NCBI GenBank assembly: GCA_965112735.1
Contig: OZ218956.1
Location: forward strand, 1,612,001 to 1,676,000
Source: Phaeosaccion multiseriatum
Taxonomy: Eukaryota > Protista > Ochrophyta, other classes
DNA: 64,000 nt
Direction of reading: 5' to 3'
This document shows positions 20,029-48,235 of the stretch, one piece after another (positions within the stretch are counted from its first letter, which is position 1; every line of letters starts with the position of its first letter). The notes under the pieces were generated by a model, which made no database searches, was not told where the DNA came from, and saw nothing but the letters and a program-made list of their open reading frames with translations. The translations under genes were made by a program, and so were the position numbers.

Positions 20029-23000
20029 ATGGTACTGAAGGGCCGGCCGGAAGCCAGCTCCAAAGATGCTTTGGGATGTGGAGCGTGGCGAGTTTTGTTG
20101 GGGGGGTCTCTATTGCTCCAGGCAGGCACGCAGTGGTGGCTTGCAGAGGCTTCCCCTGGGGATATAGTGTGTGCCACGGGGCTGGAGAACACATGCGTGC
20201 TGCACACTCCTTCTGGAGAGCTCCAATGCTGGGGGAGGTGAGGTGCTACCTTCCCGCTGTCTTTGTCCTCTGCAACAAGCAGCGAGACCTCAGCTCCGAA
20301 GTGCCAAATCAAGAGCAGAAGCAGAGGAGGGAGAGGAGGGAGAGGAGGGGGGGCAGGTGGTATCAAAATGCACCAAAACTTCTTCTCCGCTTCAAGGCTG
20401 CTGGCCAAGTTTCAACCTTTGCACAGCTTGCAACAGCCACAGCCACCTTGCCTCAAAAATACCTTCGCTCCCGTCTCGTTGCCGTTTTCGCTCTGTGCTT
20501 GTCCGCACAGTGACACCAGTGGTGCCCTGGGGCTCGGCAGCAGCGACCCGGGGGAAAACTTGGGGAATGATCCTCTCGAGATGGACGCCATTCTAGCCTT
20601 GTCGGTACGAACGCAACAAGCTCAAGACCGTGGTGTGTGTGGTCTTATCTGCTACAACTCTTGCTTGGCCTCCCTCCCCTCCTCTCCAGCGCCCCCTTCT
20701 AAAGACAGGGCGTAAGGGTAAAATTTTCTTGCTAACGACCCCCCTTCTTGTGCTCTCGCAACACATACCCCCCTTCCTGGACTGGCCCTGGACAGGATCC
20801 TATTGATCTTGGTGCGGGATTCAGCGCCCAAGCCGTCTCCGCTTCGGACAACGGCCAGTGTGCCGTAAGTGGAGTGAATGAGAAAGGAAACGCAGAAAGG
20901 CAGTGTAGCCAGGCACACTCGGTTCCTTTGGCGTGCAAACCTCATTCCAATTTCCTTGTGTCTTCTTGCTTGCTTTGCCACAGCTCGGGTCAGGAGGGTT
21001 GGTCAAGTGCTGGGGGGCGAACGGAAATGGGCAGCTGGGACAGGTGGGAGAGGAAAGGGAAAGGCAGTACCGGGTAAAAGGGAGGCCGTGCAGGCGGGGA
21101 TTGAGTGGAGGACTGGTATGGCTGGGGTGGCACTGGTACTGAGTGTATGGTGGTGCTTCTTGGTGCGTCGAGCTGCTTCTCACTCTGTTCCATCTCTCGT
21201 TGTTGCGACTGTAGGATGACTCCACTGAGCGAGGGACGGACGACTCGGAGATGGTACGCGCAAGGATGGAATCTGCGTCTTGTCCACAGCACTCAGTCTC
21301 CACACCTACTAGGTTTGCCTCATGTCTCTCCGCCCCTCTTTGCGTGCATTGCCTCTCTTATAAACACGTGCATTGCCGTGTCCTGCTGGGCGATGTCGAC
21401 AGGGCGACGGCTTGGCTGCAGGTAAGAAGGCGACCTTGTTCCTTGCACTTTTGGTTGCCACCCTTGGCATGAGAGAAGTCTTGCCAGGGAGGGATCGTGG
21501 CCCTCTTTTACGTTCTGACAATCCCTGGCTCACTATCACATGTTGTTGTTGCTAATGTAGCTGCCCCACTTCCTTTCCATCTGATCCTTGCTGCACGCTT
21601 ATTCGAACGAGCAGTGAATCTGGGTGAGACAGTGACGCAGATTAGCAGCCGACTGGATTCGGCCTGTGCTCTGCTGGCATCCGGCAACGTGAAATGGTAA
21701 GACCTGTCCCATTATGTTCCGCTTTTCCTCTCAGTGTGCTAGAGAAGAGCTGCTTGACTACTTGTATCCTCGCTGTCCACCTGGACTGTCAGCTTCTTGT
21801 TCGGCCTTTGCTTCTTGTTGCACCCTGGCGCCTCCTCCACTCACTTCTTGTCGTCGCACTGGTGCATGTCTTGGCCATGCGCAGCTGGGGCGACAACTCG
21901 AGCGGACAGGTGAGCGAGCACAGCAAGGAGTACAGTACATCGCACGCTGTCCGTCGGCCCCGACGAGAGCAGTAGTGGTGGCCGCGGGAGTCATGCGTCT
22001 CCCACTGACAGTTCCACACTAGGACTTGCACACAGTGACTGACACAAACATGTGCTTGCTGATACACAGGCCGGGCAGGGAAGCAGTAAGTCCTTTTTTG
22101 GAAAGAATAATGGCAACTCGATTGACGACGTATCGAACGTGGAACTCCCCACTGGAACGACCGCTACTTCGATCGATGCGGGCGGGGAGCATGTGTGCAC
22201 GGTGAGTACCTGTCTGTCGCCACCTCCCCGTGGCTAAAGGGAGGCCATCAATACGGCTTGCCCCCTGGGGGCATCGTATCGCTCTCCCTCCAGAGACTGG
22301 CTGAAGCTGAAAATGAGTCGCGCGCTCCCTTCTGCTGAGTTTCATCATCATCGCATCCTCTGTGATGTACGTATACGCTACCAATAGGTGCTGGACAACG
22401 GCAGCGTGGCTTGCTGGGGAGATAACACCTACGGACAGGTGAGAAGAAGGCCAGTCAGCCAAATCGAGCATCTCTCTCTCTGAATTGCACGCATGAAAGC
22501 TCTGTACTCACCAACCACGCCCTCCCTCTCGTCCACAACCCACAGCTGGGCACCGGTACCTCTGGGGGTACGGTTGGGAGAGAAGCTTCTGACATGGGGG
22601 ACAATGGAGGTACCGGTTGGGAGAGAAGCTTCTGACATGGGGGACAACTTAGAGGTGGTCGTCGGTACCGGCGCCGTCGCTACCGACATCGCCGTTGGTT
22701 ATAGCCACACATGCGCGGTAAGCTGAGCTTGTGGTTTACCTTGCGTGGGGAAGTGCTGCGAGGCGATTTTCACTCCTTTGAACGAGCCCGAGCCTCGCTC
22801 GCTGAGGATGCGGCGGAGTGAGCGCGCAGATTGTCTCGAGAGCAGGGCTTGTCAACCCTCCTCACTCTTCTTGCCCCCTTGACAATGCCTGCTCTCGGAA
22901 TACGTTGCTCATCCGCGGCACACTCAATCACCAGATTCGGTTCTTCGATGCGTCTAATGTCACAGACTTAGTCTGCTGGGGGCGCAACGACAAGGGTAAG

Positions 23001-46900: not shown

Positions 46901-48235
46901 GTCTGTCTGTCTGTCTGTCTGTCTGTCTGTCTGTCTGTCTGTCTGTCTGTCTGTCTGTCTGTCTGTCTGTCTGTCTGTCTGTCTGTCTGTCTGTCTGTCT
47001 GTCTGTCTGTCTGTCTGTCTGTCTGTCTGTCTGTCTGTCTGTCTGTCTGTCTGTCTGTCTGTCTGTCTGTCTGTCTGTCTGTCTGTCTGTCTGTCTGTCT
47101 GTCTGTCTGTCTGTCTGTCTGTCTGTCTGTCTGTCTGTCTGTCTGTCTGTCTGTCTGTCTGTCTGTCTGTCTGTCTGTCTGTCTGTCTGTCTGTCTGTCT
47201 GTCTGTCTGTCTGTCTGTCTGTCTGTCTGTCTGTCTGTCTGTCTGTCTGTCTGTCTGTCTGTCTGTCTGTCTGTCTGTCTGTCTGTCTGTCTGTCTGTCT
47301 GTCTGTCTGTCTGTCTGTCTGTCTGTCTGTCTGTCTGTCTGTCTGTCTGTCTGTCTGTCTCACTGACTTGCTGTCTGTCACCTCTTTCGGCCGGAACACA
47401 TAATGACATTCACCTCACTTGGTCGCCACAGCGTGCGGACCGCGAGAGGTACACGCCTACCCGAAAGCTCGTAAGGCATTTGTGGTATAAGACTTTCTTT
47501 GTGAACGTGCACTTAAGCGCGAATCTGCTGACCACCCGCGTGGATCAGCGAAGAACGGATCTGGCGGCAGAGACGAAGCTGGCTGACAAGCGAAAGGCGG
47601 AGGCGTTGAAGAGGCAACGGAGCAGGGCGGAGAGCAGTAGGGGCCCTTGGCGTGCTGATACTACTAGAAGTGGTGGTCCGAAAAGGGCCCTGTCCGATTC
47701 ACACAAGAGCCGAAGCCGACCGGCCTCCAGCAAAGTTCAAGTGGTGCCAACAGCAAGCCCTGATGCCTCCGACAGATTCCGGCAGGCAAGCATCAAGAGA
47801 GCGGAAACGGCGCAAAAAAGAGGAGCTTCATCGCCCATACCAACTAGACAGAGTCAAAGAGGAAGACGGTCCTCGTACGTCGACGTGGAGGAGGGGGGAG
47901 CAGCAATGAGTCGGCAGCAGTCCAGGAAGCCCCTAATGGCCCGCAATACTAGTTGTAGAAGAGCCGCTCACAAGCGAAGCCCCACCAGTGCCAGGGGGAG
48001 AAGCCGCGGTGGTGAGCGAGAGGCCTCCTTCGACGAGGAGACGTCGGATGAAGATGTGGAGGGTTTGTTCAATGCCACAGTTCTGCACCAACGATCGCCA
48101 ACCTACTCCACCGACGACGAAGCGGATCTGAGCCCGACCGACTTGAGGAGGCGGCAAGCCAGGAGGAGGTCTGCTTCCCGGAGGGCCCGGCATGCCGTGG
48201 GAAACCATGCCTTGCACGAAGCGGAGGCCTTGTGA
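34985..48235 (+). CDS. RCC1/BLIP-II propeller, PT-rich stalk, multi-pass (TRP/FLC-Pkd2-like) membrane protein, copy B (apparently intact)
   Basis: Same exon structure as copy A. No frameshift in the exons checked; exon 37452-37580 reads [28 protein letters not shown]. Stop at 48233-48235. Confidence 0.85.
38801..39755. repeat. (CCCT)n intronic microsatellite (copy B)
   Basis: Visible. Confidence 0.97.
46864..47360. repeat. (TCTG)n intronic microsatellite (copy B)
   Basis: Visible; about half the length of the array in copy A. Confidence 0.97.

Follow-up and report, generated by a model that had tools for sequence, protein, structure and literature searches.

In the genome of the alga Phaeosaccion multiseriatum, the product of each of two neighbouring gene copies, A and B, is very probably a surface protein of 1,601 residues in which a seven-bladed RCC1-type propeller is followed by a mucin-like stalk and a large multi-pass membrane domain. 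The copies lie in a window of 64,000 nucleotides (assembly GCA_965112735.1, contig OZ218956.1, positions 1,612,001-1,676,000 of the forward strand), and all coordinates given here are positions in this window. The architecture is real and unusual; as for the function, which is proposed, cell-surface recognition or adhesion coupled to the membrane domain is the most likely one. To our knowledge, extracellular RCC1-type propellers are rare, being represented by plant CRINKLY4 and possibly by brown-algal PKN, and nearly all known Flc/Pkd2 "TRP-like" membrane proteins are fungal, with a small ML-like ectodomain. The best explanation overall, which we hold with a confidence slightly above even, is that one gene per copy specifies a type-I-oriented, multi-pass glycoprotein of the cell surface, ~1,600 residues long and probably with a distantly Flc/Pkd2-related anchor.

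Tandem units and exon chains

Comparison of positions 19001-34600 with 34601-49000 by blastn gave matches that are collinear from one end to the other of two units of ~14.5 kb, with identities forming a mosaic of 75-98%, so that the tandem pair noticed in the initial annotation is indeed a tandem duplication (Table 1). The spacer between the units contains an inverted repeat, which stops at the duplication boundary.

The gene models were obtained with a purpose-written splice-aware dynamic programme, and three exons were then corrected by hand on the basis of three-way conservation. First models from a self-trained gene finder were rejected because the exons were over-split, and a curated-site model with a higher exon penalty was used instead. 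The two copies, predicted independently, have the same exon structure, and in each of them a coding sequence of 4,806 nt remains open for 1,601 codons without an internal stop, over 34 exons in copy B and 35 in copy A, in agreement with the ~35 exons estimated at the outset. The introns of copy A are GT-AG except for one GC-AG intron with its GC donor at 29741. Copy B has introns of 79-1267 nt (median, 195) and a median exon of 82 nt. Furthermore, 43 bp are tandemly duplicated within an exon of copy A, and its frame is kept only if a 61-nt intron (22568-22628), shorter than every other intron of the gene, is spliced. Exons 19 and 20 of copy B are uncertain in their boundaries. With an alternative strong donor at 41852, splicing could leave out the Ala/Gly region without loss of frame. 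A (GWLV)-type microsatellite is held by the copy B intron 41956-42485.

Table 1. Features of the two copies and of the locus, in window positions (residue numbers refer to the protein of the copy named)
Feature	Position	Strand	Remarks
Duplication unit A (copy A and flanks)	19895..34426	+	blastn, collinear with 34852-49043
Copy A, coding span	20029..33623	+	35 exons, 1,601 aa
Copy A, membrane-region exons	27809..31395	+	residues 909-1324
Inverted repeat, spacer between units A and B	34440..34845		arms 34440-34600 and 34692-34845, 87% identity
Duplication unit B (copy B and flanks)	34852..49043	+	blastn
Copy B, coding span	34985..48235	+	34 exons, 1,601 aa, every intron GT-AG
Copy B, putative signal peptide	34985..35107	+	residues 1-41; 12-residue h-region, then AEA/S; heuristic call
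Copy B, seven RCC1-type blades, exons 1-17	35108..40477	+	residues 42-481; Pfam RCC1_2 on exons 1, 4 and 11; motif spacing
Copy B, largest intron	38746..40012	+	(CCCT/CTCC)-type microsatellite, open in all frames ("LPPS" repeat)
Copy B, (APTA)n mucin-like stalk	40707..41054	+	residues 482-597
Copy B, juxtamembrane module	41055..41764	+	residues 598-769; end of exon 18 and exon 19, intron 41161-41354
Copy B, linker region	41765..42735	+	Pro/Thr linker, Ala-rich hydrophobic segment (residues 789-815), Gly/Ser-rich exon 20 (42486-42735)
Copy B, multi-pass membrane region, exons 21-33	42979..46512	+	residues 917-1334
Copy B, last exon, basic disordered tail and stop codon	47432..48235	+	267 aa

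Propeller head, stalk and juxtamembrane module

All the elements listed in the initial annotation, from a hydrophobic N-terminus through to a basic tail, are present in the spliced product of copy B. Its head consists of seven C[WF]G-x-N-x-x-G-Q-L-G units spaced by 55-66 aa (the C[WF]G motifs are at residues 67, 133, 191, 254, 319, 374 and 437), and every one of the seven blades contains a Cys pair, C-x9-14-C-[WF]-G. The blades are spread over 17 exons and the Pfam queries were single exons; RCC1_2 (PF13540) was the best family, found on exon 4 (E 0.0023, 18.1 bits), exon 11 (E 0.024) and exon 1 (E 0.041), and exon 4 also matches RCC1 (PF00415) with E 0.15. Each RCC1_2 match is under the 22-bit cut-off alone, and the three independent matches total 47 bits. 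An RCC1-like repeat family is recognized by an HMM match and by tandem units of 50-65 aa, seven of them in a closed propeller, and both were found here; the RCC1_2 matches on three separate exons and the seven motif units thus bear out the seven-bladed RCC1-type head described earlier. That this head is extracellular, as had also been claimed, is plausible from the signal-peptide-like N-terminus, the Cys pair in each blade and the sequons of the module, although the h-region is modest (12 residues, Kyte-Doolittle mean 1.6).

Cytosolic RCC1/RLD propellers and bacterial BLIP-II share with this head the repeat of 50-65 aa, the WG-x-N-x-x-GQLG signature and the Pfam RCC1_2/RCC1 matches, whereas the present propeller lies behind the putative signal peptide, carries a Cys pair in every blade and continues into a stalk and a membrane domain. 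In plant CRINKLY4/ACR4 (PDB 7a0j), the ectodomain is an extracellular RCC1-like propeller of seven blades, each with a C-x(9-14)-C-W-G hairpin. It was the only PDB match of exon 16 and shows the same hairpin, though the match is not significant (E 2.5). The TNFR-like domain, the single TM helix and the kinase of ACR4 are all missing here, so the Cys-pair hairpin is present in a protein that is not an ACR4/CRINKLY4-type receptor. In the PDB, a blade-hairpin profile and the queries from exons 1, 11, 16 and 32 retrieved solely non-significant or spurious matches, namely ACR4 (E 2.5), EF-G and a nanobody.

The stalk of copy B is 100% identical to positions 25559-25906 of copy A. The module next to it carries the RRGL motif, a candidate cleavage site, at 41139-41150 (residues 626-629) and six N-x-S/T sequons, which are enriched here, and has no Cys. 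The module exon matched no Pfam family in the single-exon scan and was blank in a word search, and its AlphaFold2 single-sequence model, mixed alpha/beta with a pLDDT of 41, is unusable. The module is followed by the Ala/Gly-rich linker (residues 788-916), and the tail at the other end of the membrane region is 17% Arg with a net charge of +27. The stalk, the RRGL module and the basic tail of the first reading were all recovered.

The membrane domain and its possible Flc/Pkd2 kinship

The membrane region of copy B, 418 aa long, has 7 clear Kyte-Doolittle segments and 1-2 weak ones, so the multi-helix region reported earlier corresponds to ~420 residues with 7-9 hydrophobic segments. The four motifs quoted for it (Q..M..MG, F..FNLWG, GYEPLFSEY and GPFNN..N) are all found in copy B, namely as QIKMMSMMG (from ~42976), FNLWG (43204-43218), GYEPLFSEY (45270-45296) and GPFNN (45915-45929, within GPFNNLLAN). 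As to the TRP/FLC-Pkd2 kinship drawn from them, the layout is Pkd2-like and a language-model search gives PF06011 as a neighbour, whereas the single-exon searches yielded no PF06011 match. A distant relationship of the membrane domain to the nine-helix "TRP-like" domain of fungal Flc/Pkd2 proteins is regarded as a lead.

PF06011 was absent up to E 10 from the Pfam results for 10 membrane exons of copy B, five of copy A and five of a third homologue, the public Logan contig L001 (exons of 20-74 aa each). When an exon-32 profile (74 aa, copies A and B) was run with HMMER against 1.84 billion proteins, no Flc-like protein was obtained; the sole relative, P0001, is a 61-aa exon fragment, namely the exon of L001, and the other matches, P0002 and P0003, are repeat-protein artefacts. 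In addition, exon 32 found no Flc-like relative among the PDB chains with HMMER, a word search with a three-sequence exon-32 profile was blank except for P0001, and metagenome scans with the exon-32 and exon-24 profiles gave pattern matches and no confirmed relative. In the ESM Atlas, the nearest named cluster of exon 32 was PF06011 TRP (score 0.88, which the Atlas grades as a lead; 194 of 256 features), the ten best named matches being of one family, and a second membrane exon gave no signal. PKD_channel (PF08016), Ion_trans (PF00520), GPS/GAIN and SEA were found by Pfam on none of the single exons, those of the membrane region being 20-74 aa. Pfam scans of raw ORF pieces as well as of exact exons assigned no family to the membrane exons or to the module. 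Matches to DUF5744, EI24 and DUF3301 (E 0.02-0.1) are at chance level and were disregarded because neither copy A nor L001 showed them again.

S. pombe Pkd2 is composed of a signal peptide, an ectodomain, a 405-aa nine-helix membrane domain and a disordered cytoplasmic tail (10.1101/2022.08.11.503631), and this order of parts, found in the Flc/Pkd2 proteins (S. pombe Pkd2, S. cerevisiae Flc1-3 and C. neoformans Flc1; PF06011, usually with PF14558), recurs in the predicted layout of the product of each copy. Unlike them, the present protein comes from an alga and not from a fungus, shows no detectable exon-level sequence match, has an ectodomain of ~900 aa (propeller, stalk and Cys-free module) in place of their 147-aa ML-like Ig domain, and has an 80-aa Gly/Ser-rich insert ahead of the membrane region. 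TRP_N (PF14558) was not found before the membrane domain, the position being occupied by the module with neither a Pfam family nor Cys and with its low-confidence mixed alpha/beta model; TRP_N is, however, not obligatory for the family because subgroup-B fungal FLC proteins lack it (PMC9600462).

The same architecture could also end in a multi-pass region that is not Flc/Pkd2-like, that is, a lineage-specific anchor or transporter, or one of another family, whose motif resemblance is coincidental, and we consider this a possible though clearly lesser reading. It would agree with the failure of every sequence search of single exons to find PF06011, with the Atlas result, in which TRP was indicated by only one exon of the two queried, at the level of a lead, and with a module beside the membrane that is not ML-like. 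On the other hand, fungal members of the family are no more than 22-29% identical to one another (PMC9600462), a level of divergence for which queries of 20-74 aa are too short. The domain is also close to that of Pkd2 in size (~418 against 405 aa), and its predicted helix count and the long disordered tail agree with Pkd2 as well.

Selection, gene unity and proposed working

The exon chain is beyond chance because 13 exons, 20-32, recur in the same order in the unrelated contig L001, ungapped save for one gap in exon 20, and with a dN/dS of 0.32 for the membrane exons. Between copies A and B, the membrane region gives a dN/dS of 0.23-0.41 at a dS of 0.3-0.67; a dN/dS of ~0.3 indicates purifying selection on the membrane exons. 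The dN/dS between the copies is 0.35 in the module and 0.21 in the Ala/Gly region, and in the tail and blade 1 it is ~1 or higher, on very few changes. Large parts of A and B are kept identical by gene conversion.

We infer that all exons of a copy are carried on a single transcript. Each unit may instead comprise two genes, one for a propeller-stalk-module protein, either secreted or single-pass, that ends in the Ala-rich segment or in a retained (GWLV)n intron, and the other for a separate multi-pass protein starting at about exon 20 or 21. The frame of exon 19 does remain open across the hydrophobic (GWLV)n repeat as far as 42217, a possible protein end, ATG codons are present in exons 20-21, and brown-algal PKN is exactly a propeller, a mucin and one TM helix. 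However, the introns separating exons 19, 20 and 21 are just 530 and 243 nt, intron phases agree in both copies, the Ala/Gly region is constrained between the copies as given above, L001 conserves exon 20 in frame and the entire span was duplicated as one unit; moreover, a gene starting at exon 21 would be without the signal peptide and the ectodomain that an Flc/Pkd2-type protein needs. The division into two genes is accordingly judged improbable. Still less probable is a reading in which copy A, copy B or both are unexpressed duplicates in decay and the open frame is left over. Although the exonic duplication in copy A shifts the frame unless the 61-nt intron is spliced and dN/dS is ~1 or higher on the very few changes in the tail and blade 1, 1,601 open codons are kept in both copies, the membrane exons are diverged and yet clearly constrained in A, B and L001, and the large identical parts are maintained by gene conversion.

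In the favoured reading of one gene per copy, the putative signal peptide would direct the N-terminus outside the cell, where the seven-bladed RCC1-type propeller, predicted to be stapled by disulfides, would serve as the binding head. The Pro/Thr/Ala mucin-like stalk would keep the head clear of the membrane, the presumably N-glycosylated module would adjoin the membrane, the membrane domain of ~420 residues and 7-9 helices would anchor the protein, and the long Arg-rich disordered tail would lie on the cytoplasmic side. By analogy with Pkd2, which has been reconstituted and assayed for stretch-activated Ca2+ flux (PMC9727806), Ca2+ might pass through the membrane domain when it is pulled or stretched.

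A functional precedent is brown-algal PKN, in which a seven-bladed propeller on a mucin stalk is used in cell (gamete) recognition (10.64898/2026.02.20.706836). Compared by architecture, the two proteins have in common a signal peptide (putative here), an extracellular beta-propeller of seven blades (predicted here), a mucin-like spacer that is glycosylated (presumably so here), anchorage in the membrane and a head that evolves fast. The first three of these features are those of a PKN-type protein, but PKN is anchored by one TM helix and ends in a short acidic tail, whereas the anchor here is a multi-pass domain of ~420 aa and the tail is long and basic (267 aa). Animal polycystin-1/polycystin-2 and transmembrane mucins are alike in concept only by analogy, with a large glycosylated ectodomain, a juxtamembrane module of possible cleavage and a multi-pass or channel part, while the PKD_channel, GPS/GAIN and SEA signatures are found on no exon here.

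A more far-reaching scheme, which we put forward as doubtful, is that these proteins are lineage-specific "tethered" channels, in which a variable head on a glycosylated stalk pulls or gates a nine-helix Flc/Pkd2-type Ca2+-permeable domain, making a one-chain algal counterpart of polycystin-1/polycystin-2, and that exon shuffling and tandem duplication exchange the heads, which generates recognition diversity. If the proposed working is true, a propeller on a mucin stalk joined to an Flc/Pkd2-type domain would be a new receptor design, the Flc/Pkd2 family would be extended to algae, and a testable model would be at hand in which binding or pulling at the surface leads into a putative mechanosensitive Ca2+ pathway. 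The differences between copies A and B concentrate in the propeller head, and the middle blades, with a dN/dS of 0.70, evolve faster than the anchor (~0.3), which points to a diversifying recognition family with mating, adhesion and self/non-self recognition as candidate roles.

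Gene model and coding constraint

The tandem genes, copies A and B, appear to join an extracellular RCC1-type propeller receptor to a membrane protein like the fungal Flc/Pkd2 'TRP-like' proteins (Pfam TRP, PF06011); both kinds are known and the combination is new, an interpretation which is partly supported by the following analysis. The initial signal was short coding pieces flanked by AG and GT in a six-frame reading, and the exon chain was obtained by a custom splice-aware dynamic programme with site matrices trained on hand-checked introns; separate runs on units A and B, the duplication blocks holding the genes, gave near-identical chains. 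Three exons of copy B (44937-45016, 45200-45305 and 45519-45596) were absent from the predicted chain and were placed by comparing A and B with each other and with a third homologue on the contig L001, and the junction of exons 19 and 20 (41955/42486; copy B numbering throughout) was chosen by phase. The final models agree with the approximately 35 exons of the initial annotation, and the exons and introns have medians of 82 nt and about 190 nt, respectively. The donor at 29741 in copy A is GC (GCAAGT), and the matching intron has a GT donor in copy B (45017) and L001 (2612).

An exhaustive HMMER search with exon 32, the largest membrane exon (74 aa), gave one genuine match, P0001, a 61-aa gene call on L001, which is a 3592-bp Logan contig from SRR29999185 (genomic, 58% GC) and the sole relative recovered across the public collections searched. 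L001 holds exons 20-32 in conserved order with introns between them, and the exon alignments are gap-free apart from one gap in exon 20. Its amino acid identity to copy B ranges over 56-95% in single exons and comes to 76% in total, with dN/dS of 0.32 at dS 0.42, and its exon 32 is nearer to copy A (83% nucleotide identity) than to copy B (75%). Between copies A and B, dN/dS is 0.23-0.41 in the membrane exons (dS 0.3-0.67), 0.35 in the module, 0.21 in the Ala/Gly region and 0.70 in the middle blades. Judged by the exon collinearity and these ratios, therefore, the assigned reading frames are under coding constraint in all three genes.

The propeller and membrane exons probably constitute one gene per copy, because the introns beside exon 20 are just 530 and 243 nt, the intron phases agree between the copies, the Ala/Gly region is constrained, exon 20 is conserved in L001 and the entire span was duplicated as a single unit. 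Nothing speaks directly against this, although an intron-retaining, single-pass isoform ending past exon 19 is conceivable, since the exon 19 frame stays open across a hydrophobic (GWLV)n microsatellite, and a strong alternative donor at 41852 makes in-frame skipping of the Ala/Gly region possible. The parts of the product of the one-gene model are listed in the table.

Features of the tandem genes, their predicted product (residues of copy B) and the surrounding window
Feature	Position	Strand	Description
Copy A	20029-33623		35 exons; CDS 4,806 nt, 1,601 aa, internal stops 0
Copy B	34985-48235		34 exons; CDS 4,806 nt, 1,601 aa, internal stops 0
N-terminus	residues 1-41		charged n-region, 12-residue h-region, AEA/S
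Propeller	residues 42-481		seven units, 55-66 aa each
Stalk	residues 482-597		(APTA)n
Module	residues 598-769		Cys-free; RRGL at 626-629
Linker	residues 770-916		PT linker, Ala-rich hydrophobic stretch, Gly/Ser-rich exon
Membrane region	residues 917-1334		hydrophobic segments: seven clear, one or two weak
Tail	residues 1335-1601		17% Arg, net charge +27
Intron microsatellites	38750-40000 and 23825-24796; 41990-42220 and 26850-27040; 46080-46330; 46860-47360 and 31720-32760; 29760-30186		open in all three frames
Degenerate short partial copies of the tail exon	33227-33385 / 48474-48627; 33811-33982 / 47857-48033		3' of each stop codon
vWA-like ORF	2711-4072	-	likely coding; DVSGSM...IVGHSGDS
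435-aa ATG ORF	18115-19422	+	likely coding; directly upstream of copy A
Kinesin-motor-like fragments	54269-55219	+	likely coding

Predicted extracellular parts

Family, structure and fold searches were made exon by exon. The hydrophobic N-terminus, the seven RCC1-type blades, the long mucin-like PTAA stalk and the RRGL-containing module next to it, all proposed in the initial annotation, were recovered. The N-terminus is plausibly a signal peptide of modest strength. All seven propeller units close with C[WF]G, and the sequence x-N-x-x-G-Q-L-G comes next. Searched singly, exon 1 (E 0.041), exon 4 (E 0.0023) and exon 11 (E 0.024) each had RCC1_2 as the top Pfam family, which is, for an exon-by-exon test, strong evidence that the units are RCC1-type repeats. 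Furthermore, every blade has a cysteine pair, C-x9-14-C-W-G, and these paired cysteines would fit an oxidising, extracellular location. The sole match of exon 16 among PDB sequences was to ACR4, a plant receptor kinase, in its extracellular propeller, whose blades carry a hairpin of the same C-x9-14-C-W-G type, the match at E 2.5 being a lead only. The differences between copies A and B cluster directly after the GQLGxG motifs in blades 2-4.

The stalk is in frame with the non-repetitive coding sequence 3' of it. Six N-x-S/T sequons lie in the module, against an expectation of about one or two; the module exon gave no Pfam family, and an AlphaFold2 model made without an alignment had a pLDDT of 41, too low to read a fold.

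Membrane region, possible Flc/Pkd2 kinship and proposed working

The TM/Ala-Gly linker, the multi-helix membrane region and the basic tail were likewise found as annotated. The Ala-rich stretch of the linker is a borderline TM helix (Kyte-Doolittle 1.8), the Gly/Ser-rich exon is conserved in L001, and an 85-aa hydrophilic loop of the membrane region contains GEW...GYEPLFSEY.

The proposed TRP/FLC-Pkd2-like nature of this region was not confirmed, and the evidence, which is divided, leans towards kinship. In the ESM Atlas feature search the nearest named family of exon 32 was a PF06011 cluster (score 0.88, 194 of 256 features), and the ten best named matches were all of one family; by the calibration of the tool itself, 194 features are typical for true family members and uncommon by chance, but a score below 0.9 is a lead only. 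In addition, the arrangement of parts fits Schizosaccharomyces pombe Pkd2, in which a signal peptide of 23 aa, an ectodomain of 147 aa and a nine-helix membrane domain of 405 aa are followed by 135 aa of mostly disordered tail (10.1101/2022.08.11.503631). The juxtamembrane module is unlike TRP_N, the ML-like domain that usually accompanies the membrane domain in fungal Flc/Pkd2 proteins. A second membrane exon gave no ESM Atlas signal, and PF06011 was absent from the Pfam results, at E up to 10, for the membrane exons of A, B and L001. No Flc-like protein was found by the exon-32 profile among 1.84 billion representatives (HMMER), by the exon-32 search of the word-indexed 5.8 billion or in the PDB, and two metagenome scans gave no confirmed relative. 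These negatives weigh little, because the exons are only 20-74 aa and fungal FLC proteins share merely 22-29% identity with one another (PMC9600462).

The analysis shows the architecture alone; that the product binds a partner, passes ions or is cleaved at the RRGL motif is inferred. The glycosylated propeller on its stalk would have its binding partner on another cell or surface. The membrane domain would anchor the protein and, if Pkd2-like, may let Ca2+ enter in response to pulling or stretching of the membrane, and the basic tail would serve to organise partners in the cytoplasm. Such stretch-induced Ca2+ entry is reported for Pkd2 in vitro (PMC9727806). For the outer half of the protein there is a precedent in function, the brown-algal PKN, in which a signal peptide, a seven-bladed propeller and a mucin region are combined with a single TM helix; it is needed for gamete recognition and has a fast-evolving head (10.64898/2026.02.20.706836).

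Duplication and repeats

The window has 51-65% GC, is microsatellite-dense and is eukaryotic in character. By blastn of 19001-34600 against 34601-49000, the region 19895-34426 is collinear with 34852-49043, and the identity of these two units varies blockwise from 75% to 98%; as read from the alignment, they are a tandem duplication, partly homogenised afterwards, in keeping with the gene pair annotated initially. In the stalk and blades 6-7 (40013-41054 and 24865-25906) the two copies do not differ, silent sites included, with the membrane exons at the dS given earlier, which points to recent gene conversion confined to this part of the gene. In the spacer of about 425 bp, two arms of about 160 bp (34440-34600 and 34692-34845; 87% identity) form an inverted repeat with about 90 bp between them. 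The right arm reaches the duplication boundary at 34852, and the repeat could be MITE-like or else a remnant of the duplication event.

In the stretch 22546-22717, an exon of copy A carries a 43-bp tandem duplication of a segment that is single in copy B (37452-37580). The frame of copy A is kept only when a 61-nt GT-AG intron (22568-22628) is spliced, removing the six residues GTVGRE; since this intron is shorter than all others in the gene (minimum 79 nt), it is either newly born or else a disabling mutation. The long microsatellites that fill introns mimic repeat proteins (LPPS, GWLV, CV, CLSV, THSL), and the THSL-type array of copy A (29760-30186) has no counterpart in copy B. The RRFSYVGVEEGGGAISRHHSRKP-like reading at 48445-48564 exemplifies the degenerate tail-exon copies, and the C-terminus of copy A has a 10-residue duplication at its very end.
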